The notes under the pieces: model-generated | Databases searched by the model: none | What the model was told of the DNA's origin: nothing | The model's input: the letters and a program-made list of their open reading frames with translations, nothing else | In this document: positions 3,240 to 36,332 of the stretch, in pieces | Layout of the letters: the number at the start of each line of letters is the position of its first letter | Position numbering within the stretch: the first letter of the stretch is position 1 | Translations under genes and position numbers: made by a program | Sequence record: MN091626.1 | Strand: one strand, 5' to 3' | Length of the DNA stretch: 64,000 nucleotides

Positions 3240-3288
3240 AAATATATATTATAAGATTGTAGAATATTAAGAGCATGATATTCTACAA
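3240..3288 (+). promoter_or_regulatory. Early-type promoter AATATATATTATAA plus leader hairpin
   Basis: Motif recurs about 12 times upstream of operons; 11-bp stem 3257-3288 follows. Confidence 0.7.
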
Positions 3289-3322
3289 ATATATTCATTA
3301 TTATAGGAGAGTGTATTAAGAT

Positions 3323-5464
3323 ATGACAAAAGACAAAACACAAAGAATGGTAGAAATTGAAGATAAGCGAAGTCATGAGTTTTTATCAGAACCTCTATTA
3401 ATGCCTAACGTTAATAGAACTAATGGTAACCGATCACAAATGTTTACATCTCACATTGGTCAATGTATTCAATTAACTGGAGCTGAACCACCTTTAATTC
3501 AAACTGGTTTTGAAAATCAAGTAGGTAAATATTCAACTGGATACAAGAAAGCTAATAGAGATTTTGAAGTTATTTATAAATTTGAAAAGAATAAGTACGT
3601 TAATTACTATTTAATTAAGTACAAAGATAATGATGAATATGATGTAATTATTAGAGAAGAAGCTAATCACTTAGCTGAGAAGTTCGGAAATAAATATAAT
3701 AATGATGAAATTGATAAACTAAAAGTTGGAGATACTGTTAGTAAAGAAACTGTATTATTTAAAGATCAAAACTATGATGAAGATAATAATTTCCAATATG
3801 GTGCTAATGCAACTTCTGTATTCTTACCATTCAAAGGTATGACGAATGAGGACGGAATTGTAGTATCAGAATCATTAGCAGAGAAAATGTCAAGTTATTT
3901 TGTAAATGTAATCAATATCACTATCAATACAAACGATATTCCTTTAAATTTATATGGAAATGAAGATGAGTATAAATCATTTCCAGATGTAGGTGAAGAA
4001 GTTCAAAATGGAGTATTGTGTGCAACTCGTAGATTGAATTACGATGAGATTATTCATAAATTTAAAAATGAAATGCTTACTAAAACATTAGAAGATGATA
4101 ATGCTTATAAAGTTCACGGTAAAGTTATTGATATTGATGTACTTAATAATGAAGATATTGAAAAATTAGAAAATCAAAAATATTCAGAGCAATTTGTCAA
4201 GTATATTAAAGAATTAAGACACTTTTATAAAACATTTGTAACTGTTACAGATGATATTGTACGTAAAAAGAAATTTAGTAATGACTTAATTAGAATTCAT
4301 AATAAATTTAAAGGTTATATTGATGATAACGCTAAATTAGTTTATGACAATAATCAATTTGATAAAATTATCTTTAGAGTTAAAGTTTTAGAAAAGAAAC
4401 CTTTAGTTCATGGATCGAAAATCACCACACGCTATGGGGGTAAAGGAGTCGTAGCTGAAATTGTACCTGATGATCAAATGCCAATGATCACAGAGTTCGA
4501 TGGAGAAGACTTCACTAAAGATTCTACTAAAACACCAATTAGTAAACGAGTAGATTTAATCCATAATAATATGGGCATCATTAACCGTGGAAATCCATCA
4601 GCTTTAATTGAGTTAGAATTAAATCATGTATCAAATGTAATAAGACATCGTATAAGTAAATTAGATGATGTTAATCAACAGAAAGAATATCTATTAGGAT
4701 ATATTAAAGATGTAGATAAAATTTCATACGATAATTATGTTAAATTATTTAATCAATTAGATTTATCTGAAACTAAAGAAGCTATTAATGAAATTATTAA
4801 AGAAGGTATTGTATTACATCAAGCACCATTCTTTGGCAATATTGATTCAGAACAATTAAGATACGTATTTAATAAATATAATATTAAGAAAAATAGATTA
4901 AATATAAGTAATAGAACATTCATGGTTGGAGATTTATATCACTTAAAACTTAAACATGAACCGTCTGGTAAATTAAGTGCAAAATCTCTTGACTTTAACA
5001 ATTACAGTGGAATTCCTACTAGAACTCCAGATAGTAAAAAGTATCTATCAAGAATTAATAACAATCCACTCAGAATTGGCGAGATGGAAACATCTAATAT
5101 GATGATCGGTGGATCTATTAAAGCAATCAATCAATTAACGAATATGTATTCAAATAACCCAGATATGCGTAAACGTTTATTAGTTGAATTGTATACAGGT
5201 AATCCATTTAAGATCAATACAGAGAGTATACAAAAACGAACTCAAAATAATAATACTAAAGTACTTAATGCTTACTTTAGTCCATTGAATGTTAGTATGA
5301 CATTTGATGAACCTGAAGAAGATGAATTACTAGATATCATGGATTTAAATGAAGACCAATTAGAATTCTTAATGGAAAAATACGAAAATTTAGATGATAT
5401 CAATGATTTAACACCTCAAGAAATAAATGGTTTAGTTAAAGAAATTATTGAAGAAAGTAAATAA
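3323..5464 (+). CDS. Multisubunit RNA polymerase beta subunit, C-terminal half (probably non-virion RNAP)
   Basis: NRSQMFTSHIGQ, GSKITTRYGGKGVV, DLIHNNMGIINRGN and RIGEMET match RpoB NRALM..NMQRQ, GDK..R.G.KGV, D...N..G..SRMN and RFGEME. Confidence 0.92.
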   Translation: MTKDKTQRMVEIEDKRSHEFLSEPLLMPNVNRTNGNRSQMFTSHIGQCIQLTGAEPPLIQTGFENQVGKYSTGYKKANRDFEVIYKFEKNKYVNYYLIKYKDNDEYDVIIREEANHLAEKFGNKYNNDEIDKLKVGDTVSKETVLFKDQNYDEDNNFQYGANATSVFLPFKGMTNEDGIVVSESLAEKMSSYFVNVINITINTNDIPLNLYGNEDEYKSFPDVGEEVQNGVLCATRRLNYDEIIHKFKNEMLTKTLEDDNAYKVHGKVIDIDVLNNEDIEKLENQKYSEQFVKYIKELRHFYKTFVTVTDDIVRKKKFSNDLIRIHNKFKGYIDDNAKLVYDNNQFDKIIFRVKVLEKKPLVHGSKITTRYGGKGVVAEIVPDDQMPMITEFDGEDFTKDSTKTPISKRVDLIHNNMGIINRGNPSALIELELNHVSNVIRHRISKLDDVNQQKEYLLGYIKDVDKISYDNYVKLFNQLDLSETKEAINEIIKEGIVLHQAPFFGNIDSEQLRYVFNKYNIKKNRLNISNRTFMVGDLYHLKLKHEPSGKLSAKSLDFNNYSGIPTRTPDSKKYLSRINNNPLRIGEMETSNMMIGGSIKAINQLTNMYSNNPDMRKRLLVELYTGNPFKINTESIQKRTQNNNTKVLNAYFSPLNVSMTFDEPEEDELLDIMDLNEDQLEFLMEKYENLDDINDLTPQEINGLVKEIIEESK

Positions 5465-5471
5465 ATAAATG

Positions 5472-5503
5472 GGAGTAATGATCATTATTTTGATCATTAC
5501 TCC
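5472..5503 (+). terminator. Intrinsic terminator hairpin
   Basis: GGAGTAATGATCA/TGATCATTACTCC 13-bp stem after RNAP gene. Confidence 0.65.
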
Positions 5504-5517
5504 TATATTTAAAGGAT

Positions 5518-6072
5518 GTGTTTAAAATTTATCCTGATTACGATGAATTTTTAAAGAAAGAATTAGACCGCTTTGGAATTGATACGGATAGTATGATGTA
5601 TCATTCTGATCTTAATTACAATTATTGTAAAGAGAAATTAGAATCAATTGAAAAGGAAGATAAAGAAATGGAATTTAATTATTTGAATTTAGAAGATATA
5701 TCTTTAAATAAAGAAGAGACAAGTGGAGTTATGACTATAAGAGAATTAGTAAATACTATTGATCACTTGATATATACAGAAAATGAAGTTACACCTTTAT
5801 ACTACTTCTTTATGGATAAAATTGATTCACTTCCTATGATTAATATGATTACTTATAAAAAGGCAGCTAACACATTCTATGAAGAATATAAAAGATATAA
5901 CACTGAAAATCATTCAGCTTATATAAATATTAAGGGAGAATGGAAACAGTTATCATTTAATCAATTTAAAGAATCTTTAAAAGAAGTTTTATTATCTTCA
6001 CATAAAGAAAGCAATGTTGATAAATTATTTAAAGAGTTAAATAATTTAGCTGTAAAAGATAATTTTTCATAA
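5518..6072 (+). CDS. Hypothetical protein; degenerate KEY..VKxxF-type C-terminus (LAVKDNFS)
   Basis: 184-aa ORF; C-terminal comparison. Confidence 0.7.
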   Translation: MFKIYPDYDEFLKKELDRFGIDTDSMMYHSDLNYNYCKEKLESIEKEDKEMEFNYLNLEDISLNKEETSGVMTIRELVNTIDHLIYTENEVTPLYYFFMDKIDSLPMINMITYKKAANTFYEEYKRYNTENHSAYINIKGEWKQLSFNQFKESLKEVLLSSHKESNVDKLFKELNNLAVKDNFS

Positions 6073-6101
6073 TTGCTCTTAGATCAAAATTAGTAATAAG
6101 C

Positions 6102-6152
6102 ATATATTATAAATATGAGACAATGTTCATTAACTTGATCATTGTCTCATAT
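6102..6152 (+). promoter_or_regulatory. Early-type promoter plus 13-bp leader hairpin
   Basis: ATATATTATAA then ATATGAGACAATG/CATTGTCTCATAT. Confidence 0.7.
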
Positions 6153-6191
6153 ATTGTTTTATTTTTTATAAATAAGGAGATGAATTGGATA

Positions 6192-8069
6192 ATGGAAAAT
6201 AATACATTAAATTCGTATATAAAGGAAGATTTTAAATATTTTAAAGATGATAAATTAGAAATTGATGAAATATTTAACTTTAAAGATGATAAGACTAAAG
6301 AAAAATTTGAAACGTTTTTTAATGGAGTTATATACACATTGAAAAATTTGAATTATGTTGAATTATCTGAAATGTATAATGAATCAATTAAAGAGAAAGG
6401 TAATACTCAAGTTAAATCTGAAAGTTATATAAATTATTTAAATAATGAATTGAAAAATAAAAGACTAAATAAAGAAACTAAAAAACTTTATAAAGATTTA
6501 TTAATGACTTTAGAAGATGATTTGAAAAGATATAATGCTAATTTAGATGACAGCATTATAAATAAATTATTCAAAAATAAGTATATATCAATATCTTATT
6601 ATAGTTTAATAGTACCGTATAATATTGCTAACGAAATTGAATTTAATAAAAACTATTATATCTTTCTTGAATTAGAAGATTTTGTTAAATTCATAGTATT
6701 TCCGTATTATCAGCTTTTATACCTATCTAAAAATAATTTAAGAAATATTTATATAAAGAATACAGATATAAATCTTCATGATTATTTTATTGATATAATA
6801 AAGAGTTATATTAAAAATTTAATAGATAATAAAGATGTAGATACACTAAAGGATTTATTAGATGTGTTAACAAATGAGCACGAATATCTAAGATCCCCAA
6901 AATATACAGACTATAGAAAAGGTAATGGTAGAAATTTATTTGAGTTGCTAATAGATATGAATTTCAATGAATTTAAAGACTTATTATATGAAATGATATA
7001 TATTATAATGAATAATAATCTAAAAAAAGAATTACAAGTAGAAATGAATTATGATATATACAAACACAATATATTTTTAATAAGTTTAATGAATGATGAA
7101 GTAGAAAGTCATAGACAACCTAAATTTAATGATAAATTTTTAATAGAGAGTAATAATACAATTAGAGCTACTGCAAGTGCAGATTTATACAGTAAAAATA
7201 ATTACTACCAAAATAACTTATTAGGACACTATATTAATGATCTATATGTAAATAAAAATAAAATAAATAAATTTAAAAGGGTTAATAAAGTTAGAAGTCT
7301 TAAATCTTTTATTTATTTAACTAACCAAAGATGCATTATCGGTGGTGAGTCATATTATAAATATCTATATAAATATTTATTTGATCCAAGTAACTTAACT
7401 AGAGAAGAGTTTGAAGTATCTACATTATTAATTAAATTGATAACTTGTAAGTCTAGTAATCAATTAAAGAAAGTTATGGAGAATGCAAAAACCAACTCTA
7501 TATTAAATAATCTTTTATTTGAAACAGAAATTAATGATATAATTAAAATTGGTATAGAAATGAATATTAATACTATATTCAATGAAAAGGGTTTAAGTAA
7601 AATTAATACAGTTGATTTAACTGTAGGAAATATTGTAAAACCTTTGTTATATAATAACGCAAATGATTATGAAGAACAAACAGAAATCATTAATTCAATA
7701 TTTAAAAATTTTACTTATGATATAGATATCAATTTTGATAAATATCATTACAAAGATTTAGATGAATATTTTGAAAGTAGATTAAATTTAGGTCTTTTAA
7801 AAGAATCAAATATAGATATTAGTATTAATATTAATTATAGTAAAATTGCAAAAACTATTGTAAATAATATTAAAGATAAACTTAGAGGAAAATATGATTT
7901 TGAAAAGAATGAGTTTATTATTACTTATGATAAGATGAATATTACTCGTTTAACTTCTACAGAGTTCTGTAATGGTTTATGTGAATATTTAAGTAAATAC
8001 TTCCCAGAAGAAGCTAAAAAGTTAAATAAGAGTTTTAGAGCTGAAATTGTAAATACAATGTTTAGATAA
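6192..8069 (+). CDS. Large hypothetical protein (start re-called from 6123 to 6192)
   Basis: AAGGAG SD at 6174-6179; 6123-6190 is hairpin/leader. Confidence 0.75.
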   Translation: MENNTLNSYIKEDFKYFKDDKLEIDEIFNFKDDKTKEKFETFFNGVIYTLKNLNYVELSEMYNESIKEKGNTQVKSESYINYLNNELKNKRLNKETKKLYKDLLMTLEDDLKRYNANLDDSIINKLFKNKYISISYYSLIVPYNIANEIEFNKNYYIFLELEDFVKFIVFPYYQLLYLSKNNLRNIYIKNTDINLHDYFIDIIKSYIKNLIDNKDVDTLKDLLDVLTNEHEYLRSPKYTDYRKGNGRNLFELLIDMNFNEFKDLLYEMIYIIMNNNLKKELQVEMNYDIYKHNIFLISLMNDEVESHRQPKFNDKFLIESNNTIRATASADLYSKNNYYQNNLLGHYINDLYVNKNKINKFKRVNKVRSLKSFIYLTNQRCIIGGESYYKYLYKYLFDPSNLTREEFEVSTLLIKLITCKSSNQLKKVMENAKTNSILNNLLFETEINDIIKIGIEMNINTIFNEKGLSKINTVDLTVGNIVKPLLYNNANDYEEQTEIINSIFKNFTYDIDINFDKYHYKDLDEYFESRLNLGLLKESNIDISININYSKIAKTIVNNIKDKLRGKYDFEKNEFIITYDKMNITRLTSTEFCNGLCEYLSKYFPEEAKKLNKSFRAEIVNTMFR

Positions 8070-8085
8070 AAAGGAGAAATTAAAA

Positions 8086-8643
8086 ATGGATGTTAAAAAA
8101 ACGTTTAATGCAGATATAATGAAAAATGATGAAAAGGCTTTCAATCATATTATTAAAAATTGTATGTCTTTTTATGATAAAAGAAAAATGTATAATGAAG
8201 TTAATGATGACAATGAAGTTTTAACATATATATTTAATAACCACAAAGAAGAATTAATGAAAAGAAATAATGGTTTAATAGCTATATCAAAAGATCTAAA
8301 AGATCTTATTAGATACACCGTTGTCGATTATTATTTATTAAGTTTATTAAGAGATTTTTCTTCATTTTCAGTTGGGTACCGGGATATTGAAAATTTTGTT
8401 GAGATGTTAAAAATGGAGTTATTTAAACCAGATCAAGAAACTTTAAGTCAATTTTCTTCAAAAGATGATATAATATATTTATATTATAATACAACACTAA
8501 ATAAAATAATAAAAGTTGATCCTATTATGTACTTAAAAGCACTAATGGAGTATGTTAAAGAAGAAAAAGAATTCTATGGAGATCTATCTATAGAATTTGA
8601 AAAAGAAGTTAAAAAATATTTAGTTGAAAAGAACTTTAAATAA
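8086..8643 (+). CDS. Hypothetical protein, C-terminal-tag family (KKYLVEKNFK)
   Basis: AAGGAG SD; C-terminal motif. Confidence 0.8.
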   Translation: MDVKKTFNADIMKNDEKAFNHIIKNCMSFYDKRKMYNEVNDDNEVLTYIFNNHKEELMKRNNGLIAISKDLKDLIRYTVVDYYLLSLLRDFSSFSVGYRDIENFVEMLKMELFKPDQETLSQFSSKDDIIYLYYNTTLNKIIKVDPIMYLKALMEYVKEEKEFYGDLSIEFEKEVKKYLVEKNFK

Positions 8644-8660
8644 AGGAGAGATGATATTTA

Positions 8661-9395
8661 ATGAATGGATATGGAAAAATTAATAAAAAAGTTTTTAATA
8701 TAGATCGTAGCAACTTTGAAGTAGTTTTAATGGACTACATGGACACTAAACAGATGAAAAATAATTATAATAGGGATATAACCGATCAAGAAAAAATTGA
8801 TCGGTTAATACCTTTAATTAAACAACAAGAAAATGAACAAGATGAAGGTAGAATATTTGAAAATGCTAGAAGATATGAACTTCTTTTAGCTAAAACATTT
8901 GAATACTCTCTTAATGGAAAATTAGAATTATACAAATTAAAAGAAGTATTAAATTATTACGAAGAAAAAAATCTTTTTAATATAGTATATCCAAATTTTA
9001 GATACACTTTTAATGTAGAATCTCCCAGTAAAGAGTATTCCTTATTATCTTTAAAAACTAAAATATTTTTAATTATAGAAACTATTATAGATTTTATTAA
9101 AAATGATTATGTAGAAGATAATCTTTCTATTAAGTTAATTTTAAATTCAGAAGAAATAATGATTGATACCCTTGATTTAAACGAAAAATCTTTGTGTAAT
9201 ACCTTTAGTCTACAATATACAAATGAATTGTTATCTTATAATGGAGATTATTTGTTCTCACATGATCAAATAAAACGTATAGAAAATATAAATAATATTT
9301 TATTTAACGATATATACAAAGATAAAGATAAAGAAATTTTAGAATTTTTATCTAAGAAAGTAAAAAATAAATACATTTCAAAATATTTTAAATAA
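8661..9395 (+). CDS. Hypothetical protein, degenerate C-terminal tag (KYISKYFK)
   Basis: AAGGAG SD. Confidence 0.8.
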   Translation: MNGYGKINKKVFNIDRSNFEVVLMDYMDTKQMKNNYNRDITDQEKIDRLIPLIKQQENEQDEGRIFENARRYELLLAKTFEYSLNGKLELYKLKEVLNYYEEKNLFNIVYPNFRYTFNVESPSKEYSLLSLKTKIFLIIETIIDFIKNDYVEDNLSIKLILNSEEIMIDTLDLNEKSLCNTFSLQYTNELLSYNGDYLFSHDQIKRIENINNILFNDIYKDKDKEILEFLSKKVKNKYISKYFK

Positions 9396-9412
9396 ACAGG
9401 AGTGAATAGGAT

Positions 9413-10582
9413 ATGTCAAATTTAACTATGCAAGAAAAAGACTTAATTATGATTGAAAATAAGTATAATAGATTTTTAGATAAAAAGGAAAAGATAATGA
9501 ATAAAGAAACAGACTTTATTAAAATTGCATTTGAAGAATTAATGGACTTCATTGTACATTTTGGTCATAATAAATTCTTTAAATCAGACACAATATTTTA
9601 TAGAGATTATGATAGAATGTTAGAGAATTATAAAATAGAATTAAATAAAATATCTAAAGTGGAAGATGATTTAGTACTAACTTATTTAAATAAAATTATT
9701 AATGACACCGATAAAGATGAATTCTATGATGAAATGAAAAGAATTTCAGAAAGTTATAGTAAAGAAAAATTAGTCGTATCTATATCATATATAAAAGCTT
9801 TGGACTTCTATATACACATGATGCGAAATGAAGAATTAATGAGTGATATGGGATCTCTTACAGTTCATCCTTATGATTTTAATAAACGATTAATAAGTGA
9901 ATATAAAAAAGATAATATATTTTGGAAAAAACTAAGTGATGAAGAGAAGTCAAATGCAATTCAAATGTCTAATATATATTTTGAAGGTATTGAAAATAAA
10001 GAAATCGGTAGGTCTACTACGAAATATATAAATGGTGAAAAAGAAGGAACTGTATTTAATTTTAATATAAATACATTTCATAAATTTTTCGATCAATTTG
10101 TATCTTTGGATATAGCTTATACAGACGGTTTAATATTTAATTTAATGATGAACAGTAATATCAGTAAATATTATGAGAAATACTATAAAAAAACAGAACA
10201 TGATATCTTCAATACTAGTTATATTTCTGATAAATATGACTATGAAAACTTAGAAAAAGATAAATTTTTAAAAACTTTAAATCGTATAGATATGTTTTAT
10301 GATATAAATGTACCTTTATATATTTATAATAGTGAAGATTTATCAAATAAAAAATACTATAATTATCTAACTGCTATGAAGTCTTTTGCTTTAAATGATT
10401 TGGTTAATCGTTATTATGATTCTTATGAATATATAGAATATTTTAGCGAAGTTAATGTCAATGATTCTTTCACGTTAGATATGTTAAGTGACGATGATGA
10501 AAGTGAATCAAATTATTTTGAAGAATTGTTTAAAAAAATAAAGAAAGAAAATGAAGAAAGACAATGGTTACAAGCTTTTTAA
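9413..10582 (+). CDS. Hypothetical protein
   Basis: AGGAG SD; 389-aa ORF. Confidence 0.8.
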   Translation: MSNLTMQEKDLIMIENKYNRFLDKKEKIMNKETDFIKIAFEELMDFIVHFGHNKFFKSDTIFYRDYDRMLENYKIELNKISKVEDDLVLTYLNKIINDTDKDEFYDEMKRISESYSKEKLVVSISYIKALDFYIHMMRNEELMSDMGSLTVHPYDFNKRLISEYKKDNIFWKKLSDEEKSNAIQMSNIYFEGIENKEIGRSTTKYINGEKEGTVFNFNINTFHKFFDQFVSLDIAYTDGLIFNLMMNSNISKYYEKYYKKTEHDIFNTSYISDKYDYENLEKDKFLKTLNRIDMFYDINVPLYIYNSEDLSNKKYYNYLTAMKSFALNDLVNRYYDSYEYIEYFSEVNVNDSFTLDMLSDDDESESNYFEELFKKIKKENEERQWLQAF

Positions 10583-10612
10583 AATTTATTTAAAGAGAAG
10601 AGGAGACAATTT

Positions 10613-10816
10613 ATGATATTTTTAATTGGTATATTAGTCATTATTTTAATTTGGTTGGAAATAATATCATTTTCTTTATTTATATCAAGTCTGATAAGTT
10701 TACCATTTTCAATATTTGACACAGGAACAAGTGATTTTATTAAAGAAGATATAATAACAGCGTTTCTATCAGGTTTATCTACCGTCATAATCTTTTTCAT
10801 ATTATCATCGTTCTAA
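10613..10816 (+). CDS. Small 2-TM membrane protein
   Basis: GAGGAG SD; hydrophobic helices. Confidence 0.7.
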   Translation: MIFLIGILVIILIWLEIISFSLFISSLISLPFSIFDTGTSDFIKEDIITAFLSGLSTVIIFFILSSF

Positions 10817-10834
10817 TAAAAAGGAGAGAACATT

Positions 10835-11062
10835 ATGTTTGCTTTATTGGGAATATTAGCAATAATATTTTTATTATTAATATTTATAGGTTTACCTTTA
10901 TTTGTCATGGGAGTAGCTTGCATATTTATGTCACTTTATGAAATCTTTGTAGAAAAAGAAAAAGATATTGATATGCTACTGACATCAACTTATATAACTC
11001 TCGGTTCATCAATGGCATTAGGTTTAGCTATCTTTATATCATTTTGTGTTGAAAGCATGTAA
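10835..11062 (+). CDS. Small 2-TM membrane protein
   Basis: AAGGAG SD; hydrophobic helices. Confidence 0.7.
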   Translation: MFALLGILAIIFLLLIFIGLPLFVMGVACIFMSLYEIFVEKEKDIDMLLTSTYITLGSSMALGLAIFISFCVESM

Positions 11063-11089
11063 TCATTTAAAATAAAAAGGAGAAATATT

Positions 11090-13081
11090 ATGTTAAAATT
11101 TAATGAAATTAATGAAAGTAATTTAGATGACGTACAAAAATATTTAGAGGAGCAATCTTATGTATATTATAATACATCAGATCAACCAGAATTAACTGAT
11201 GAAGAATTTGACAAACTATTAAGAGAATATGAAAAGTTCCGTCCATTTAATGGCGGTGCTTTACCTTCTAAAGGTAAAAAATTAGTAGATGTTTCACATG
11301 AATATCCTGAATTAGTAGGAACAGTTTCTAAGGTTAATTCAGTTGAAGAATTAGCTGAATGGATTGAAGAAAAAGGATTAATTAATAGAGAATTATTAAT
11401 TACACAGAAATATGATGGTAATTCAGTATTAGTCATTTTAACTACTAAAGGAGATTATTTAGTAACTAAATCAGCATTAACTAGAGGTAAAGATGGTAAA
11501 GGTGCTGACTTAACTGACTTCTTCAGTCATATTAAAATTAAAAAATCAGATGTAAATATTAATGCAGTCGATTTATCTGAAGATGATATTGATATCGCTA
11601 TTAAGTGTGAAGCAGTAATGAGTTATAGTAACTTTAATAAGATTGATGAAGAGTATGCTAACCCTAGATCAATCGTTGCAGGATTATTAAACTCAGATGA
11701 TGGATATAAGAAACGTAAGTTAATTAATTTATTACCATTGAGAATCAATATTAGTAATAAAGAATTAACTCGACAAGAAGAATTGAATTTAATTTCAGCA
11801 ATTACTAGTCATAGTACTGTATTTGATCAACTTGATCCACAGTATAATTTTGTTATGGAAGATGAACACGATTATAAAGACTTTAATGAATTATATCATC
11901 AAATAGCTGATGAAAGAGAGTATTATGAATACATGATTGATGGATTAGTTATTGAAGCTCTTGATGAAGATGATAGAAATCGTTTAGGCAGATTAAATGA
12001 TCGTAATAAGTTTGATGTAGCATTGAAATTCCCATATATGACTAAAAAGACTAATGTTATTGATATTGAATTTGATGTATCTGAGAACGGAACTGGACGT
12101 TACACACCTGTAGTTAGATTTGAACCTATTTATTTTAATGGTGCTAAATGTGAAAGAGTTTCTATTTCTAACTATAAACGTTTTAAAGAACTTCAATTAG
12201 TTAAAGGACAAGAAGTTATTATTGAATATCGTAATGATGTTTTGAGTTATTTAACTCCATCTCCTACTAACGAAATTACTGGAGAACCTATACCGTTCAT
12301 TAAAGAGTGTGTATACTGTGGTGAAGAACTTGAAGTTAATGAAAATGAAACATTTGTATCATGTATTAATAACGATTGTGAATGTAGAGTATTAGGTATT
12401 ATTAACAACTATGTAGATAAAATGAGTATTAAAGGAATTGAATATTCTACTATTAATAAGCTTTATAAAGGTAACAAACTACCTAACGGAATCCAAAGTT
12501 TATATGAAATTGATAAAAACGATATTATGCAAGTAGATACTTTTAAAGAAAAATCAGCTCAGAATATTATTAATACAATTCATAAAAATAAAGAATATTA
12601 TGACTATGATGTATTAGGTTCATTAGGATTAAATGGAGTTGGAAGAACTACATTTAAATTAGTTACTAAAGTCTATGATCCACAAGAAATAGATTATACA
12701 GATTTAAGTATTAAAGATTTAACTTCTATTAAAGGAATCGCTGATATTACTGCTGAGATTATTATTAATGGTTATAAACAGAATAAAGATTTAATTGAAT
12801 TCTTATTTAATGAATTGGATGTTAAATCACTTAAAAAAGAAATGGAAGCTAATAAAGATGATTCAGTTGAGCCAATGAATATTGTATTTAGTGGATTTAG
12901 AGATGCTGAATTTAAAGAACAGTTAGAACTTAAAGGTCATAAAGTAACTTCATCAGTTTCAGGTAAGACTGATTTATTAGTTACTCCAGATCCAAATTCA
13001 GGTTCATCTAAGATTAATAAAGCTAAAGAAAAAGGTATCAAGATCATTGATATTGAAAGTTCTAAAGGTGAGTTGTTATAA
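11090..13081 (+). CDS. ligA: NAD-dependent DNA ligase
   Basis: YY...P.LTDEEFD domain Ia, KYDG adenylation motif, DGLVI, ALKFP, OB fold TG..TPV, Zn finger C..C...C....C, HhH and C-terminal BRCT (VFSGFR, VSGKTDLLV). Confidence 0.95.
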   Translation: MLKFNEINESNLDDVQKYLEEQSYVYYNTSDQPELTDEEFDKLLREYEKFRPFNGGALPSKGKKLVDVSHEYPELVGTVSKVNSVEELAEWIEEKGLINRELLITQKYDGNSVLVILTTKGDYLVTKSALTRGKDGKGADLTDFFSHIKIKKSDVNINAVDLSEDDIDIAIKCEAVMSYSNFNKIDEEYANPRSIVAGLLNSDDGYKKRKLINLLPLRINISNKELTRQEELNLISAITSHSTVFDQLDPQYNFVMEDEHDYKDFNELYHQIADEREYYEYMIDGLVIEALDEDDRNRLGRLNDRNKFDVALKFPYMTKKTNVIDIEFDVSENGTGRYTPVVRFEPIYFNGAKCERVSISNYKRFKELQLVKGQEVIIEYRNDVLSYLTPSPTNEITGEPIPFIKECVYCGEELEVNENETFVSCINNDCECRVLGIINNYVDKMSIKGIEYSTINKLYKGNKLPNGIQSLYEIDKNDIMQVDTFKEKSAQNIINTIHKNKEYYDYDVLGSLGLNGVGRTTFKLVTKVYDPQEIDYTDLSIKDLTSIKGIADITAEIIINGYKQNKDLIEFLFNELDVKSLKKEMEANKDDSVEPMNIVFSGFRDAEFKEQLELKGHKVTSSVSGKTDLLVTPDPNSGSSKINKAKEKGIKIIDIESSKGELL

Positions 13082-15422: not shown

Positions 15423-15473
15423 TAAATATATATTATAAAATTGTGAAAGATGTATGATACTTATACATCTTTC
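15423..15473 (+). promoter_or_regulatory. Early-type promoter plus leader hairpin
   Basis: TAAATATATATTATAA then GAAAGATGTAT/ATACATCTTTC. Confidence 0.7.
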
Positions 15474-17169: not shown

Positions 17170-17217
17170 ATATATATTATTAAATTGAGGTAATGACATA
17201 TTATTTGTCATTACCTC
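17167..17217 (+). promoter_or_regulatory. Early-type promoter plus 12-bp leader hairpin
   Basis: TAAATATATATTATTAA then GAGGTAATGACA/TGTCATTACCTC. Confidence 0.7.
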
Positions 17218-23211: not shown

Positions 23212-23212
23212 A

Positions 23213-23261
23213 TAAATTTATATTATAAAAGTGAGGTAATGGATATTATATTCATTACCTC
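23213..23261 (+). promoter_or_regulatory. Early-type promoter plus leader hairpin
   Basis: TAAATTTATATTATAA then GAGGTAATGGA/TTCATTACCTC, same stem as 17187. Confidence 0.7.
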
Positions 23262-23288
23262 TAATATTATTTACACTAGGAGAGTGAA

Positions 23289-23795
23289 TTGGATATGGCA
23301 AAAGAAATTTTTAGTTCAGAAGATATTTTTAAGGATTTAACAGATTTTCACACAGAAAGTAGATTAGAGGAATTTAGTCACAAGAATATTTTAACGTCTT
23401 TATTAGAAAATGCAGATAGTAAAAATAATTTAGAAAAAATAATATTGATTCTATCTATAAATATTAATTCATCTTTAAAAAATTTAAATTCTATTGAAGA
23501 TGAAATGATAGATGTTTTTAGTAAAGAAATAGATATTAAGAAAGATAAAGATAATATTGATTTGCTATTAAAAAATCTTAGAAATGTTAAAGATAATTCA
23601 AGTATGGAAGACATTAAAGAATATTTAGTATTAGAAGTATCTTTAGATGAGGTTATTGATAAAATTAATGAAGATGATTTTTATAATGAAGAAGTAAAAG
23701 ATTTATATCTTAAATTCTATAATAATCTTTCTATTTTAATTATATCTTTTAAATTGTTAACATTCTATAATGGTTTTAATAATGTAGTATCTTAA
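23289..23795 (+). CDS. Hypothetical protein
   Basis: ORF with SD; ATG 23295 is an alternative start. Confidence 0.7.
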   Translation: MDMAKEIFSSEDIFKDLTDFHTESRLEEFSHKNILTSLLENADSKNNLEKIILILSININSSLKNLNSIEDEMIDVFSKEIDIKKDKDNIDLLLKNLRNVKDNSSMEDIKEYLVLEVSLDEVIDKINEDDFYNEEVKDLYLKFYNNLSILIISFKLLTFYNGFNNVVS

Positions 23796-23815
23796 TTAAA
23801 TTTAATATAAGGAGA

Positions 23816-24445
23816 ATGATTAGAATGAGAGATAAATTTTTATTATTTGAAAATGATGATAATAGCATATATATGCTATTATCAAATTTTAAATTCAATA
23901 AAGAAATTAAAATAGATTATACACATGATATAAAAAATATCGATGATGTTCCTAAGTATTTTAATAAAGGAATAAAGAGATTTAAAATGAGATATGACTT
24001 TCATTCAGGTCATATTATTAGACAAGATGAATTTTACAACTACATGGATAATTTAGATGCTGATTTTAAAAATTCAAATGCTAAAGCTTTAGAGAAAATA
24101 ACTTTCTCTAATCTTATTAGTGATGATAAAATCAATATAGTATATACAGGTAAGAAAGATGATAATAATAAAATTGTAAAAACTAATATTTACTTTATTG
24201 TCCCTGTTAGTATTATTTCTGAGGAATTAAATTCAAATCTAATATCGTTAGATATTACAGCTATGAATAAAAGATTAAATGATGTTTATAAATCTGAAAC
24301 AACCAATCAGAAATTATTAGGGATAAAACCTAGTGTTACAAATATCAATATTATTGATAGACAAAATAAAATTATTAATGAATACTTTAGAGATATAGGA
24401 GTAGAATATAACTTTATTAATGATTTTAGTAAATCAGAAGAATAA
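23816..24445 (+). CDS. Hypothetical protein
   Basis: AAGGAG SD. Confidence 0.75.
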   Translation: MIRMRDKFLLFENDDNSIYMLLSNFKFNKEIKIDYTHDIKNIDDVPKYFNKGIKRFKMRYDFHSGHIIRQDEFYNYMDNLDADFKNSNAKALEKITFSNLISDDKINIVYTGKKDDNNKIVKTNIYFIVPVSIISEELNSNLISLDITAMNKRLNDVYKSETTNQKLLGIKPSVTNINIIDRQNKIINEYFRDIGVEYNFINDFSKSEE

Positions 24446-25191: not shown

Positions 25192-25547
25192 ATATTAGGA
25201 TAATGATCAAATTAATGGTCATTATCCTAATATCATTTTCTTTTTTTGTAACTACCATTATTTTAGATATATATTATAATTATGAAGGGAGGAATATAGT
25301 AATGATATTTAATATTCTAATAGCATTAGCATATGTGGCACTTGTTTCTTTAGGATTAGGTGTTTCAGCTTTTTATATATCTTTATTTTTATTAAGATAT
25401 ATAAAAAATAATATTATCAAGAAAGAAATTAAAAATGAAAATAGAAAGTTATTTTATCTTTCGTTATTAATAGTTATAATATTCATGTCAATAAAATCAT
25501 ACGTTGATATAAAATTAAGTATTATAGAACAAATATTAAAAATGTAG
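25188..25547 (+). CDS. Membrane protein (3 TM)
   Basis: ATGA overlap; hydrophobic. Confidence 0.7.
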   Translation: MNIRIMIKLMVIILISFSFFVTTIILDIYYNYEGRNIVMIFNILIALAYVALVSLGLGVSAFYISLFLLRYIKNNIIKKEIKNENRKLFYLSLLIVIIFMSIKSYVDIKLSIIEQILKM

Positions 25548-25617
25548 AAAAGCGTAACATAAGACATTTTAATTATATATTATAATAATGAAGATATTAT
25601 AATATTAATTATATCTT
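25547..25617 (+). promoter_or_regulatory. Bipartite promoter AAAAGCGTAAC-N15-TATATATTATAA plus hairpin, copy 1
   Basis: Identical spacing in three copies. Confidence 0.7.
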
Positions 25618-25644
25618 TAATAAAAAAAAAGAGGAGAAATTAAA

Positions 25645-25923
25645 ATGACAGAATTTGAAAATGAAACTAAAGTATCAAAAGAGGAGAAGAAGATTAAAAG
25701 ATTTATTGATCAAGGTATTGATAATTTATCTGATACAGTAGGAGAAGGTATTGAAGGTATTCCGTTATCTTTAACTGATTATTTTCCTAAAATAAAGAAA
25801 TTAATTATTAAATTAATTGATAGAGAGGAAAGTGATGAAATTAAAATGACGAATGAATCAGGTGAAGTATTTAAATTTAATAGAACTTCACATGATATTT
25901 ATTTAACAGCAATCAAATTTTAA
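25645..25923 (+). CDS. Hypothetical protein
   Basis: GAGGAG SD. Confidence 0.75.
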   Translation: MTEFENETKVSKEEKKIKRFIDQGIDNLSDTVGEGIEGIPLSLTDYFPKIKKLIIKLIDREESDEIKMTNESGEVFKFNRTSHDIYLTAIKF

Positions 25924-25961
25924 AGAAAATTTTCTATGATCCAAAAAAAAAAATTAAAGGT

Positions 25962-26594
25962 GTGGTGTATATGATTAAAGTCAATGAACTATTAACACAA
26001 GTTAAAGAAATAAAAACAAATGACAGTTATACGAAATTAGTAAACGAGTATAGAGATATTATCAATGAAGAATATATATCTTATAAACCATTAAAAGATT
26101 ATTACAATTTCATTATATATTATTTAGAAAAATCTAGATATCAAGCATTGAAATCTAACAATTTTGATGAATCTAATTTAAATATCAAAACATTGATAGA
26201 CGATCTAATGACATTAAACAATATTGTTAAATCTGATATTTTTGATACTAAAGAAGTAATCAGATCTACTGGTTTTAAATTAACAAATGGTAGTACATTT
26301 GATAGAATTATTAAATACATTAAAGATAAACTAGATAAATTAATTATAGAGATAAATTCAGATAATTATAAATATCAAAATATCTATTTCTATCTACCTG
26401 AGCTAAATAATCTATTGCATAATACAATTCATATAGAACGTGTTTTAGATAAAAATAAAGATAATGTAGATATTATTAATATAGATAAATATAATTTATT
26501 TGAAATGATGCCTTGTAATGATATTATGGATAAAGATGAATTTTATATAATGGTTAATCATTTATATGATTTAGGATCTTTAGAAAAAGCGTAA
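25962..26594 (+). CDS. Hypothetical protein
   Basis: AAAGG SD; follows TTTTCTATGATCC motif. Confidence 0.75.
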   Translation: MVYMIKVNELLTQVKEIKTNDSYTKLVNEYRDIINEEYISYKPLKDYYNFIIYYLEKSRYQALKSNNFDESNLNIKTLIDDLMTLNNIVKSDIFDTKEVIRSTGFKLTNGSTFDRIIKYIKDKLDKLIIEINSDNYKYQNIYFYLPELNNLLHNTIHIERVLDKNKDNVDIINIDKYNLFEMMPCNDIMDKDEFYIMVNHLYDLGSLEKA

Positions 26595-26683
26595 CGTGTA
26601 ATAAAATAAGTATATATTATAATTATGAAGAAAGAGTTTATCATTAATTCTTTCTAATATAAAATTAAATGGAGGAATTTATT

Positions 26684-26854
26684 ATGAAAAAGAATTTAGT
26701 ATTGAAAAGTGTAGCAGGTCTTGGATTAGGTATTGTATTAGGTGTAGTAAGTAATAAGATTGACGACATGATTATGCAAAAGGAAATGGAAAGACAAATT
26801 TTTGAAAAAGCTTCAGAAATGACTTTTGAACATCCGTTCGCTAATTTAAAATAA
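26684..26854 (+). CDS. Small single-TM protein, paralog of 27396 (start re-called from 26669)
   Basis: GGAGG SD before ATG 26684; MKKNLVLKSVAGLGLGIVLGVVSNKID. Confidence 0.75.
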   Translation: MKKNLVLKSVAGLGLGIVLGVVSNKIDDMIMQKEMERQIFEKASEMTFEHPFANLK

Positions 26855-26881
26855 AGGAGGAAAGAGGATAATTGTTTTAAA

Positions 26882-26932
26882 GGTCTAATGAAAATGGATC
26901 AAGTTCATTAGGTCTATAATTTTCTATGATCC
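26882..26932 (+). other. Predicted H-type RNA pseudoknot, copy 1
   Basis: 11-bp stem with G-U pairs; loop GGATCA complementary to downstream TGATCC. Confidence 0.5.
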
Positions 26933-26956
26933 AATAATAAAAAGGAGTTAAAAACA

Positions 26957-27271
26957 ATGAATAACAAAACTAAATTAGCAGAATTAAGAAAAGAATTAAA
27001 AATCGTATATTCGGATATAGGATTGAGCAAAACGAGTACTGTAGAAGAAAGACTTCACAAGAAAAAAGAAAGATTAATTAAAGAAATTAATGAAATAGTA
27101 GAAAAAGATCAAAACATTTTTGATAGAGAAAAACATATAGCAAAAGTTAAAGACCGAAATAATGATAATATTTACAAAGGTTCAGATGAATTTTCTAAGG
27201 CAGGTAGACTTCATAGAAAATATCAAAAACAAGATAAAAACAGAATATTCAATAATCCGGTACAAGATTAA
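26957..27271 (+). CDS. Basic hypothetical protein, paralog of 27847
   Basis: Shared YKG.sd..KAGRLH..yQ motif. Confidence 0.75.
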   Translation: MNNKTKLAELRKELKIVYSDIGLSKTSTVEERLHKKKERLIKEINEIVEKDQNIFDREKHIAKVKDRNNDNIYKGSDEFSKAGRLHRKYQKQDKNRIFNNPVQD

Positions 27272-27395
27272 ATATTCATATAATCAGTTGAATTTGAAAA
27301 AGCGTAACAATATGGTTTTTAATTATATATTATAATTATGAAGAAAGAGTTTATCATTAACTCTTTCTAATAAAAATTAAAGGAGAAAAATTATT

Positions 27396-27566
27396 ATGAA
27401 AAACTTAGTATTGAAATCAGCAGTTGGATTTGCGGCAGGTATTGTATTAGGATTAGTGAGCAATAAAATTGATGCGTACACATTAGCAAAAATTGAAGAG
27501 AAAGAAGTATTAGATAAAGCAGATAGTATTATTAATAATTAATTAGGAGTTGAAAAGGATAATTGA
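27396..27566 (+). CDS. Small single-TM protein (56 aa), not in ORF track
   Basis: AAGGAG SD; MKNLVLKSAVGFAAGIVLGLVSNKIDAYTL. Confidence 0.8.
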
Positions 27567-27571
27567 TTTAA

Positions 27572-27623
27572 AGACCTAATGGACACGGATCAAGTTCATT
27601 AGGTCTATAATTTTCTATGATCC
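27572..27623 (+). other. Predicted H-type RNA pseudoknot, copy 2
   Basis: 12-bp stem; same loop-tail GGATCA/TGATCC pairing. Confidence 0.5.
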
Positions 27624-27658
27624 AATAATAAAAATAAAAATGAAAAGAGGAAATTAAA

Positions 27659-27841
27659 ATGTTAGACTTATTAAAAGGAATTGAATTTGTAAATGAAAAG
27701 GAAATTAACGAAGAGAAAGAATTATTAATCAATTATTCAGATGAAGCAAGATATCCATCTGAACAAGCTTATAGAGAAATAGATTCAATCATCGAAAGTT
27801 TCGACAATACAGCTTTCGGATTAAGAAAATGGGGAGTGTAA
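27659..27841 (+). CDS. Hypothetical protein
   Basis: GAGG SD. Confidence 0.65.
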   Translation: MLDLLKGIEFVNEKEINEEKELLINYSDEARYPSEQAYREIDSIIESFDNTAFGLRKWGV

Positions 27842-27846
27842 TTAGA

Positions 27847-28149
27847 ATGGTTAGAGAAGAAAAAATCAAACAAATGAAACAAGAATTACAAAAAATATTA
27901 GATAAAGAAATTAGATTTGGTTATAAACCAATTTCTAATAGAGACTTTGAAAAGAAATTAAAATTAATGAAACAGATAGACAAGTTAAAATTTGACATTA
28001 GATCTGAAAGATATTTAAGAAATGTCAAAAAGAACAAAATAAAGGAGTATAAAGGTATTAGCGATTATGCAAAAGCTGGAAGATTACATCAATCTTTCCA
28101 AAGTAAAGAAGAGCATAATCTATGGAAAGAAGAATTAGTAATTCAATAA
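27847..28149 (+). CDS. Basic hypothetical protein, paralog of 26957 (start re-called from 27829)
   Basis: GGGGAG SD; KAGRLH motif. Confidence 0.7.
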   Translation: MVREEKIKQMKQELQKILDKEIRFGYKPISNRDFEKKLKLMKQIDKLKFDIRSERYLRNVKKNKIKEYKGISDYAKAGRLHQSFQSKEEHNLWKEELVIQ

Positions 28150-28169
28150 CATAAATGGAGGAATTTATT

Positions 28170-28406
28170 ATGAAAATTTTAAGATTAAAAACTGAATGGG
28201 CGTTAGTTTTAGGTATGATATTAGGTTCAACTATTGGTTTAATGTCAAATGATTTCTTTGTAGGAGCTACAATTTCTATGTTGACACCAATAATTACTAT
28301 AGCAATTAATTATGTAATTGGTGATGAAAGAAAATCTAAAATCCAAGAAAGTAATAAATTATACTATATTAGAATGAATAGTGAAAAAGGAGATATATTT
28401 AAATAA
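28170..28406 (+). CDS. 2-TM membrane protein (start re-called from 28155)
   Basis: GGAGG SD, same ATGGAGGAATTTATTATGAAAA as 26669; INYVIG shared with next gene. Confidence 0.7.
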   Translation: MKILRLKTEWALVLGMILGSTIGLMSNDFFVGATISMLTPIITIAINYVIGDERKSKIQESNKLYYIRMNSEKGDIFK

Positions 28407-28606
28407 TGAATAAAGAAAAAAGATTATTGAAACTAAAGCCATGGATATTATTTTGGTTTACTCTTATAACTGGTTTTATCATAGGAGAAATGATTGGATA
28501 CGTAGAAGGGAAATCGTTATTTTTAGGTTTAATTTTGTCTGGAATATGTCTATCTATCAATTATGTTATAGGTGAAATTAGAAGAGATGGATTAAGAAGT
28601 GATTAG
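28406..28606 (+). CDS. 2-TM membrane protein, paralog of previous
   Basis: LK..W...INYVIG. Confidence 0.7.
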   Translation: MNKEKRLLKLKPWILFWFTLITGFIIGEMIGYVEGKSLFLGLILSGICLSINYVIGEIRRDGLRSD

Positions 28607-28651
28607 GATTAAATTTAGATTATTAATTAAATAATAAGGAGGTGCTTGGAT

Positions 28652-28759
28652 ATGTTATTAGAAAACTTTGTTACAATTATCGTGTTACTTGGTTTAATGA
28701 AATTTACAGGTTGTTTTAAATTTATGAAAGAAATCTGGTCTAACAAAGGTAACAAATAA
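28652..28759 (+). CDS. Micro membrane peptide (35 aa), not in ORF track
   Basis: AAGGAGG SD; MLLENFVTIIVLLGLMKFTGCFKFMKEIWSNKGNK. Confidence 0.6.
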   Translation: MLLENFVTIIVLLGLMKFTGCFKFMKEIWSNKGNK

Positions 28760-28836
28760 CAACAAAAGAGTGGATTATTTCTATGATCCGCTCTACATAT
28801 TTAAATTAAAAAAAAAAACGAAAAGAGGAAATTAAA

Positions 28837-31389: not shown

Positions 31390-31431
31390 ATATATATTAT
31401 AAAAATGAGTAATATTAATTAATATTACTCA
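31387..31431 (+). promoter_or_regulatory. Early-type promoter plus perfect palindromic leader
   Basis: TAAATATATATTATAA then TGAGTAATATTAATTAATATTACTCA. Confidence 0.7.
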
Positions 31432-31994: not shown

Positions 31995-32026
31995 ATCCCA
32001 ATGAGATGAATTATTCTCATTGGGAT
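31995..32026 (+). terminator. Hairpin
   Basis: ATCCCAATGAGA/TCTCATTGGGAT then TATTTT. Confidence 0.65.
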
Positions 32027-35354: not shown

Positions 35355-35362
35355 TTACTATT

Positions 35363-35384
35363 TAAATATATATTATATAAATGA
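35363..35384 (+). promoter_or_regulatory. Early-type promoter (no clear hairpin)
   Basis: TAAATATATATTATATAAATGA, identical to minus-strand 59750-59771. Confidence 0.65.
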
Positions 35385-35415
35385 AGTTAATTAAAATACA
35401 GGAGATGAATTGGAT

Positions 35416-35757
35416 ATGTTAAACGATACTAAAAAAGTTTTAGACAGAATATATGACAAAATAAATGGTGATTTAATTGTTATTTCAGAGTGTAAAGATC
35501 TATTTGATAAGGAATTAAATTACACTTTAACTGAAGGTAATGAAGAAACAACAAATCTTGATTATTTGGCAGATTCTTTAATTGTAGTTTCTTCAGATAT
35601 ATTTACTTTAAATGAAGTACTTAATATTGATGAAGAAACTATTAATAAAGAATTATTAGAAGAATTTAAATTGAGTTATAGAATGATACAAAATTTCCAT
35701 ATGAAATTAGAATTAAGTAGTTATAAATTAAAAAAGATTAAAACCTCGGTTGAATAA
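35416..35757 (+). CDS. Hypothetical protein (ATG 35416; TTG 35410 alternative)
   Basis: AGGAG SD. Confidence 0.7.
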   Translation: MLNDTKKVLDRIYDKINGDLIVISECKDLFDKELNYTLTEGNEETTNLDYLADSLIVVSSDIFTLNEVLNIDEETINKELLEEFKLSYRMIQNFHMKLELSSYKLKKIKTSVE

Positions 35758-35776
35758 ATATAGGAGATGATTAGGA

Positions 35777-36262
35777 ATGAATTATTTAAAGAATGAAAAA
35801 GAGGAGGTCTTTCCAGTCAATGAAGAAGGAATGGAGAATATTATATTCTTTCTTCTAGACTACTCACAGAAAAATGATTATAATACAATGAATATAATTA
35901 AAGAAATAAATGATCACGTGATGAAAGGCGAAAATATAAGTAATAAATTTATTAATGAAAGTACAAAAGAAGTGATATTAACATTAGGTAAAGTAAAAGG
36001 TAATTTAACTAATGAATTAGCTAGAAGCGGATATATAGTTAATTTCTCTAGAAATAAAATATCATTATCGATATATGTAAAAAATAATAATTTCAAATTA
36101 GTAAGAATTTCAGATCATAATATTAATAAAAAAGTAAATAAGAAAGGAGTAATTAGTAATAGGTTTGACTATCAAGTTAAAGCTGACAATAAATTGGTAA
36201 GTAATAAATCTTTAAAGAAATATGGTATTGATGTATCAGAAGGAATTTATTATTTAGATTAA
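35777..36262 (+). CDS. Hypothetical protein
   Basis: AGGAG SD; LVRISDH motif. Confidence 0.75.
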   Translation: MNYLKNEKEEVFPVNEEGMENIIFFLLDYSQKNDYNTMNIIKEINDHVMKGENISNKFINESTKEVILTLGKVKGNLTNELARSGYIVNFSRNKISLSIYVKNNNFKLVRISDHNINKKVNKKGVISNRFDYQVKADNKLVSNKSLKKYGIDVSEGIYYLD

Positions 36263-36284
36263 TAAGAGTATTGAATTAGAAATC

Positions 36285-36332
36285 AATTATATATTATAAT
36301 AATGAAGATAAATATTATTAATATTATCTTCA
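36285..36332 (+). promoter_or_regulatory. Early-type promoter plus leader hairpin
   Basis: AATTATATATTATAA then TGAAGATA...TATCTTCA. Confidence 0.7.

Follow-up and report, generated by a model that had tools for sequence, protein, structure and literature searches.

The phage, the window and the genomes compared

The window analysed here is a stretch of 64,000 nucleotides (nt) that corresponds to positions 62001-126000 of sequence record MN091626.1, the genome of the Staphylococcus jumbo phage PALS_2 (window 18000-24000 is 100% identical to PALS_2). It contains twelve early-promoter sites on the plus strand and one on the minus strand, many of them joined to a stem-loop at or within a few nucleotides of the predicted transcription start; this promoter-hairpin unit is the subject of the present analysis. 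PALS_2 is a member of the S6/MarsHill group of jumbo phages, which have deoxyuridine-containing DNA (dU-DNA) genomes of ~260 kb; the G+C content of PALS_2 DNA is ~25%. Positions 1-41500 of the window form a near-continuous plus-strand gene array. The window also holds genes with Rpb2_6 and Rpb1_2 domains, encoding split RNA polymerase (RNAP) beta and beta' subunits related to those of AR9 and PBS1 (39% identity between the PALS_2 and AR9/PBS1 beta subunits). AR9 and PALS_2 are related dU-DNA jumbo phages, each with two split multisubunit RNAPs. MarsHill, the DNA of which is 96% identical to that of PALS_2, has ten RNAP subunit genes (Korn et al., bioRxiv 10.1101/2020.12.14.422802).

Sites were compared across the whole PALS_2 genome and those of SA1, Machias, PB50, AH12 and LY01, the last five being ~75-93% identical to PALS_2; these six Staphylococcus phage genomes are related and pooled counts are not independent. 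AR9 (Bacillus), BpSp (Bacillus), LPJP1 (Listeria) and phiR1-37 (Yersinia), which have the same promoter core, served as outgroups. Leader statistics were calculated with gene calls from a simple rule combining an open reading frame with a Shine-Dalgarno (SD) sequence.

The early promoter motif

In AR9, 41 early promoters were mapped by differential RNA-seq, with the consensus AAATATATATTAT-N6-G(+1); their activity without protein synthesis is the reason why they were assigned to the virion RNAP (Lavysh et al., 2017; PMC5312081). The PALS_2 core reads TATATATTAT and is followed by six mostly A/T bases and then by a G, the predicted first transcribed base. The consensus of the clade sites, TTAAATATATATTAT-AaaAAT-G-A (also written TTAAATATATATTATAaaAATGA), matches the AR9 sequence, and the likeness extends to the core, the spacing to the conserved G and the placement before early gene arrays. 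The G stands at the seventh base past the core (a 6-nt gap) in 21/24 exact sites of PALS_2, 21/24 of SA1 and 27/28 of Machias, in genomes that are ~13-15% G. Each genome contains the pattern 26-35 times, compared with 0-2 times for the same pattern read backwards as a control. The promoter sites are intergenic and co-oriented, and lie 5' of genes with an SD sequence; there are 28-32 such sites per genome.

A sequence-only reading of the window had previously listed eleven plus-strand copies of the motif. All eleven were recovered within a few bases of where it had placed them, and a twelfth intergenic copy at 25268, which it had overlooked, was added. It had also named three copies on the minus strand: that at 59758-59767 has the full consensus, although its stem is weak, while those at 18336-18345 (-) and 57495-57504 (-), located 5' of PALS2_087 and PALS2_140, have no start G, no stem and very short leaders, and may be variant promoters or chance matches. 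At 6997 and 23121 exact 12-mers also occur within genes; neither has a G seven bases on, and they are probably not promoters.

Host promoters of the sigma-70 type were considered and rejected as an identity for the motif: the scan was not enriched (177 vs 184 and 173 vs 197 expected), so the motif is not simply a host promoter. The motifs are probably AR9-type early promoters read by the virion-packaged multisubunit RNAP of PALS_2, as predicted by homology, and we infer the transcription start at the G through homology to AR9. The sequence-only reading had likewise taken them for virion-RNAP promoters, which agrees with the fit to the experimentally mapped AR9 early promoter including its G at +1 (PMC5312081); it had drawn the comparison with phiKZ, for which AR9 is the better substitute. 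The virion-RNAP motif of the phiKZ and 201phi2-1 early promoters is likewise extended and AT-rich, with a core resembling TATATTA, but it is longer and has another consensus, and the transcriptome papers (PMC8244752, PMC11512511) do not report a +1 hairpin. The promoter part of the unit is already known by homology, and the same motif was predicted earlier in MarsHill, where MEME located an AR9-like AT-rich TATATTAT motif upstream of 29 genes (bioRxiv 10.1101/2020.12.14.422802).

A stem-loop at the predicted transcription start

A hairpin was scored where a stem of at least 7 base pairs (bp) started within +1 to +4 of an exact TATATATTAT-N6-G site. Such stems are present at 23/29 sites in PALS_2, 19/29 in SA1, 23/34 in Machias, 20/29 in LY01, 21/35 in PB50 and 21/32 in AH12. 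At random G-starting positions in the same genomes the rate is ~7%, and the enrichment over this background has a binomial p of 5e-16 to 5e-21. The stems at clade promoters are 7-14 bp long. Their 5' ends form a sharp peak at -1 to +5, the only one in the 80 nt on each side; relative to the predicted +1 the offset is 0 in 28 stems, 1 in 18, 2 in eight and 3 in four, so that 46/58 leave no more than one unpaired 5' nt. Given an AR9-type start, the transcript would have 0-3 unpaired nt and then the stem, the 5'-terminal arrangement that the sequence-only reading had proposed.

The leaders differ accordingly in length. In the same genomes the distance from +1 to the SD is 42-45 nt with a hairpin and 23-26 nt without, ~15 nt lying between the end of the stem and the SD in hairpin leaders; in AR9 and BpSp it is 18-22 nt. 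From these lengths the stem looks like a module of 25-30 nt added at the extreme 5' end of an AR9-like leader. AR9 itself has ~20 nt of leader before the SD and no +1 hairpin, its starts having been mapped experimentally whereas those of PALS_2 are predicted.

In the same stem test the outgroups remain at background (AR9 2/25, BpSp 1/29, LPJP1 2/39, phiR1-37 4/43), and a check by hand of annotated AR9 promoters gave a +1 hairpin at 0/8. Candidate late sites in the clade, located 5' of other genes with the late consensus of AR9 (AACA-N6-TR) rather than one of the clade's own, have stems in only 3-5% of cases. The stem is confined to early promoters and to the Staphylococcus phage clade.

These comparisons bear on whether the stem might act on the clade's virion RNAP, either as nascent RNA in promoter escape or pausing or as a fold of the non-template DNA strand that aids the open complex. 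Its tight fixation to +1, the conservation of +2 to +4 as A-R-R in the clade consensus and its confinement to early promoters would suit such a role. It is nevertheless quite unlikely, as the hairpin is missing from four relatives that share the consensus and have homologous polymerases, 20-35% of the clade promoters have no stem and, among orthologous sites with an intact core, the stem is gained or lost; a fixed recognition element would also not be expected to vary in stem length or to have loops as long as 13 nt. Hairpin-assisted promoter recognition, which the sequence-only reading had put forward as an alternative, is disfavoured by the same hairpin-less relatives. The virion RNAP of phage N4 does require a conserved DNA hairpin, located upstream of +1, for recognition, and N4 resembles PALS_2 in that its polymerase is packaged in the virion and its promoter is coupled to a hairpin. 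A hairpin promoter of the N4 type was rejected for PALS_2, where the stem lies downstream of +1, differs in sequence from site to site, is biased towards the RNA sense and can be dispensed with, as relatives that have this core do without it.

A scan of IMG/VR with a 20-nt promoter word returned 29 stretches with one exact match each; many are plausibly chance matches in AT-rich contigs and some carry giant-virus-bin labels. One of them, IMGVR_UViG_3300043093_000048 (L159; 265 kb, 26% G+C), has five early-type motifs in 12.8 kb (2468-12650), two with +1 stems and three with very short leaders; contigs L145, L152 and L162 are related to it. This uncultivated contig of jumbo-phage size may represent an intermediate lineage for the hairpin trait.

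No hairpin or stem-loop at early promoters is mentioned in the AR9, phiKZ and 201phi2-1 transcriptome papers, the MarsHill preprint or the PALS2 and UFV_DC4 genome papers. The MarsHill preprint deals with the same clade and the same motif, and the words hairpin, stem-loop and terminator have 0 occurrences in its text. Rfam gave 0 matches at the gathering threshold in the window. The hairpin part of the unit appears to be undescribed in the literature.

Conservation of pairing and of strand

The genes downstream served to locate orthologous promoters. A 5' stem is kept in 92/105 orthologous site-by-genome instances, often with unrelated sequence; examples are the orthologues of the window sites at 15443, 31407, 36304 and 59751. 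When orthologues were threaded onto the PALS_2 structures, 15 pairs had changed on both sides with pairing kept and 3 with pairing lost. The test also gave 34 single broken pairs, many of which come from orthologues that fold another stem at the same place, so that the threading count understates conservation. In the GAGGTAATG family (16 sequences) 99.4% of the cells are paired, compared with 91.8 +/- 1.1% in shuffles, none of which (0/500) reach the observed value; double-changed cells number 17 against 5.5 +/- 2.1 in shuffles, and only 28-65% of cells are paired when the partner is slid by 1-3 columns.

The 85 distinct promoter-linked stems comprise 833 pairs, of which 814 are Watson-Crick and 19 are G-U, with 0 A-C, under a stem scoring that treats G-U and A-C alike. 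The nominal p of 2e-6 for this asymmetry is too small because common descent accounts for part of the G-U events, but the asymmetry itself is clear. The presence of 19 G-U and 0 A-C pairs points to a structure selected in the mRNA-sense strand and not in the antisense strand. Taken together with the covariation between orthologous sites, which bears out the earlier observation that the stem sequence varies while pairing is kept, the comparison indicates that pairing rather than sequence is selected and that this selection is sense-strand specific. It is likely that the stem is a 5'-terminal RNA structure of the early transcripts in their sense strand.

The same asymmetry bears on the proposal, also made in the sequence-only reading, that the stems terminate antisense transcription. 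Read on the minus strand the unit is a hairpin followed by AUUUUUAUAAUAUAUA, since the N6 consensus AAAAAT gives a U-run right after the stem, and the stem at 15445-15473 was called terminator-like on that strand. The 19 G-U and 0 A-C pairs counted in the plus sense mean that an antisense RNA would contain mismatches in several stems; only 1/10 is flagged as terminator-like on the minus strand, and the sites lie inside long plus-strand arrays with nothing to terminate. Antisense termination is accordingly very improbable.

It is just as hard to credit that the stems are functionless palindromic repeats spread along with promoter cassettes. Related stems do recur at several promoters, as in the GAGGTAATG family, and cassettes are duplicated at 25547-28836; on the other side, orthologous sites hold unrelated stems at the same position, and the compensatory changes, the strand asymmetry and a tenfold enrichment persist over ~20-25% sequence divergence.

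Individual sites in the window

For each site the 40 nt from the base seven positions past the core were folded, and z and the number of shuffles at least as stable were obtained from 200 shuffles. Ten of the 12 plus-strand sites have a stem. Nine of these are strong (-7.5 to -18.5 kcal/mol, z -3.3 to -11.9, 0/200 shuffles as stable) and one, at 25590, is weak; there is none at 25284 or 35383. The sequence-only reading had described stems after ten of its eleven copies, and these were found, starting 6-9 nt past the core, the exception being 35383.

The first core, TATATATTAT at 3243-3252 (+), places +1 at G 3259, ahead of PALS2_067 (beta subunit of the non-virion RNAP), which starts at 3323. 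The hairpin at 3259-3286 (+) begins at +1 and has 11 bp and a loop of 6 (-11.3 kcal/mol, z -4.87, 0/200 shuffles); its SA1 orthologue shows two compensatory pair changes. At 6101-6110 (+) the core is CATATATTAT, with one mismatch; the predicted +1 is 6117, the hairpin at 6117-6148 (+) runs from +1 (-16.5 kcal/mol, z -4.76) and the gene starts at 6192. The core at 15427-15436 (+), with a predicted +1 at 15443 and a gene start at 15508, is followed by a stem of 13 bp from +3 at 15445-15473 (+) (-14.1 kcal/mol, z -5.54), for which SA1 and Machias have different stems. The most stable stem, of the GAGGTAATGAC type, lies at 17187-17217 (+) (12 bp, -18.5 kcal/mol, z -6.76) and begins at the predicted +1 of the core at 17171-17180 (+), the gene starting at 17251; in PB50 a C-G pair is replaced by U-A as a compensatory change. 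The core TTTATATTAT at 23217-23226 (+) also has one mismatch; from its predicted +1 at 23233 a stem of 13 bp including one G-U extends to 23261 (+) (-15.9 kcal/mol, z -6.16), with the gene start at 23295. The G-U is G-C in LY01, and in the Machias, PB50 and AH12 orthologue the start G has moved and the stem has moved with it, now beginning at the new G.

The overlooked core at 25268-25277 (+) has +1 at 25284 and no hairpin; its SD, GGGAGG, is at +4 in an 18-nt leader and the gene starts at 25302. At 25574-25583 (+) the core predicts +1 at 25590 and the gene starts at 25645; the weak hairpin at 25590-25618 (+) has 8 A/U-rich bp and a 13-nt loop (-4.5 kcal/mol, z -1.45, 19/200 shuffles), and its LY01 orthologue has 11 bp (-8.3 kcal/mol). 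The cores at 26611-26620 (+) and 27324-27333 (+), with predicted +1 at 26627 and 27340 and gene starts at 26684 and 27396, have paralogous hairpins. That at 26629-26655 (+) has 10 bp, including one G-U, from +3 (-9.1 kcal/mol, z -3.31), and that at 27342-27368 (+) has G-C for the G-U (-11.4 kcal/mol, z -4.51); this swap had been noted correctly in the sequence-only reading. The region 25547-28836 comprises three to four repeated cassettes of a promoter, a 5' stem and a small gene, and the genes 5' of the cores at 25574, 26611 and 27324 share the end GAAAAAGCGTAAC, 14-20 nt before the core.

The core at 31391-31400 (+) has its predicted +1 at 31407 and its gene start at 31457. The hairpin at 31407-31430 (+) has 10 bp and a loop of 4 (-9.7 kcal/mol, z -11.9) and is followed by an A-tract; the stem in SA1 is unrelated. 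From the core at 35367-35376 (+), with a predicted +1 at 35383 and a gene start at 35416, no stem forms in PALS_2 or LY01, which have lost it, and SA1, Machias, PB50 and AH12 have a 6-bp GAAGTT/AACTTC stem. The core at 36288-36297 (+) predicts +1 at 36304, with the gene start at 36358; the hairpin at 36304-36331 (+) (-7.5 kcal/mol, z -3.83) is again followed by an A-tract, and its orthologues have different stems in Machias, PB50 and AH12 and none in SA1, where it has been lost. On the minus strand the full-consensus core at 59758-59767 (-) has its predicted +1 at G 59751 and precedes PALS2_142, which starts at 59692; the hairpin at 59726-59751 (-) is weak (7 bp, -3.4 kcal/mol, z -0.52), and the orthologues have 10 bp in SA1 and, in the Machias group, 7 bp that differ in sequence.

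The operon for the beta-N and beta'-N parts of the non-virion RNAP (18507-21439) has a 190-nt upstream spacer without an early-type motif; the only promoter-like feature seen in window 18350-18506 is an extended -10-like TGATATAAT at 18398-18406.

Terminator-like hairpins and the upstream gene

Hairpins of a separate class follow stop codons directly. They have G+C-rich bases, AAATTAAT-type loops and U-rich tails, and there are dozens of them genome-wide. In the window such hairpins are located at 1471-1503, 5472-5503, 17975-18007, 31995-32026, 36659-36695 and 41482-41515; the bases of their stems are of the CCCCTAA.., ACCCTAAC.. and GGAGTAATGATC.. kinds. A further one with a U-rich tail, at 25192-25233 (+), is 5' of the 25268 promoter, and another, at 3187-3216 (+), is 5' of the 3243 promoter and outside the promoter-hairpin unit, so that a single spacer holds both kinds of hairpin: 3187-3216, then the core at 3243 and then the 5' stem at 3259-3286. 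A divergent junction at ~7930-7990 of PALS_2 has on its minus strand an early-type promoter with CCCCTAA-CCCCTAA repeats after it, this heptamer being the arm sequence of many terminator-like hairpins.

An unlikely reading places the main role of the promoter-linked hairpin in the operon upstream, where it would terminate transcription or shield 3' ends from 3' exonucleases, and any 5' role would come second or be combined with this one. In its favour, the promoter abuts the upstream stop codon, and at ~70% of sites no other hairpin comes between that stop and the promoter-linked stem; arms of the GAGGTAATGAC type also occur in terminator-like hairpins that have no promoter, for example between convergent genes at PALS_2 171295. 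Since rA:dU and rU:dA hybrids should both be weak in dU-DNA, an A/U-rich tail might suffice for termination. The tails themselves argue otherwise. Promoter-linked stems with at least 7 T in the 10-nt tail number 0/14, 1/7 and 0/10, the tails being A-rich or mixed, while the rate in other hairpin/strand combinations is ~23%. A terminator scan was passed by 2/10 window stems, 23233-23261 on the plus strand and 15445-15473 on the minus strand, which leaves only 1/10 terminator-like in the sense direction. Promoters with and without a 5' stem have a terminator hairpin upstream equally often (31% in both groups, odds ratio 1.0), and the rate is similar in AR9 and BpSp. Stems also occur at divergent junctions that have no upstream co-directional gene (PALS_2 167536 on the minus strand, 173683 and 244699 on the plus strand), they start within 3 nt of +1, and a true terminator at +30 would halt the just-started transcripts too. 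As intrinsic (rho-independent) terminators the promoter-linked stems were rejected, as in general they neither have a U-tract after a G+C-rich stem nor substitute for the upstream unit's terminator.

Proposed function of the stem

The best overall explanation, in which we place slightly better than even confidence, is that of AR9-type early promoters with a 5'-terminal stabiliser hairpin. The virion RNAP would start at the G, and the first 25-30 nt of the transcript would fold back so that the triphosphate end is base-paired; the early mRNA would then consist of a paired 5' end, ~15 unstructured A/U-rich nt, the SD and the gene. Such an end should be a poor substrate for an RppH-type pyrophosphohydrolase and for the 5'-end-dependent RNase J1/J2 and RNase Y. 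The B. subtilis enzyme BsRppH needs a minimum of two unpaired 5' nt and prefers three or more, and in this organism RNase J1 attack and 5'-end-dependent endonuclease entry come after removal of the triphosphate (PMC3997798). Both 5' stem-loops and 5'-proximal ribosome binding are established mRNA stabilisers (PMC3997798). The promoters without hairpins would fit the ribosome-binding strategy, with the SD at +4 of the 25284 transcript and ~20 nt from the end in AR9 and BpSp. Stabilisation of early mRNA as the main role of the stem, argued from the paired 5' end, seems to us about an even proposition, if anything a little better.

Several known leaders offer precedents. The ompA and papA leaders of E. 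coli and the aprE leader of B. subtilis are 5'-terminal stem-loop stabilisers (PMC3997798). As here, their stem lies within a few nt of the triphosphate end and pairing rather than sequence matters; they differ in being single cellular genes with measured effects on half-life, whereas in the phages ~20-25 promoters per genome are involved and the effect is predicted. The phi10 leader of phage T7, on a transcript made by a phage polymerase, has a stable stem-loop at +1 and is known to be stabilising. It differs from the leaders of the PALS_2 clade, with their many covarying stems, in having one conserved sequence and in belonging to a late gene transcribed by a single-subunit RNAP.

The stabiliser reading has points against it. 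The sequence-only reading had given the presence of RNase J1 in Firmicutes as its ground for protection, which is not enough by itself: AR9, BpSp and LPJP1 also infect Firmicutes that have RNase J and RNase Y and carry no hairpins, so nuclease protection does not explain the restriction to one clade. The 20-35% of clade early promoters that lack a stem, together with single orthologues that have lost it, mean that the stem is not essential at every unit. The wobbles, as G-T, fit a structure in the non-template DNA strand as well as one in RNA, and are thus equally compatible with an action on the polymerase. Finally, some arms (GAGGTAATGAC) are common to promoter-linked stems and to terminator-like hairpins elsewhere in the genome, which leaves room for a common origin or for a second role at 3' ends.

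An improbable alternative makes the stem a tag on early messages for a phage or host protein, which would serve timed destruction, selective translation or sparing from a phage-induced shut-off. The limitation to one temporal class and one clade and the conservation of structure rather than sequence would agree with a tag, as would the strong decrease in host mRNA reported on AR9 infection (PMC5312081). Neither the loop nor the stem has a conserved sequence to which a specific binder could attach, no candidate protein emerged and the idea is purely conjectural. In a related form, which we consider rather improbable, the stem would be a clade-specific 'self' mark that spares early messages from phage-triggered, 5'-end-dependent destruction of host mRNA, or would be needed for escape or processivity of the virion RNAP on dU-DNA. 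Two further candidates were discarded: the stems, at 7-14 bp, are too short for RNase III sites, and translational control does not fit an SD that lies ~15 nt past the stem and is never paired.

Implications

Transcription by the virion polymerases of jumbo phages is known from a few models only, namely phiKZ, AR9 and phiR1-37, and the Staphylococcus jumbo phage clade is of interest for phage therapy. What is new is the systematic, clade-restricted coupling of an AR9-type early promoter with a 5' stabiliser-like stem-loop, each kind of element having been known before. The ~85 natural, sequence-diverse 5' leader stems are candidate parts for expression or stability in S. aureus. Should the stems prove to act on the polymerase itself, a sigma-less multisubunit RNAP would have a promoter-proximal signal of a new kind. 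The presence of the stem at ~70-80% of the early promoters of one clade and its absence from sister clades with the same promoter constitute a clean natural experiment, which can reveal the limiting factors for early phage mRNA in S. aureus and through which the action of RNase J, RNase Y and RppH on phage messages becomes directly testable.

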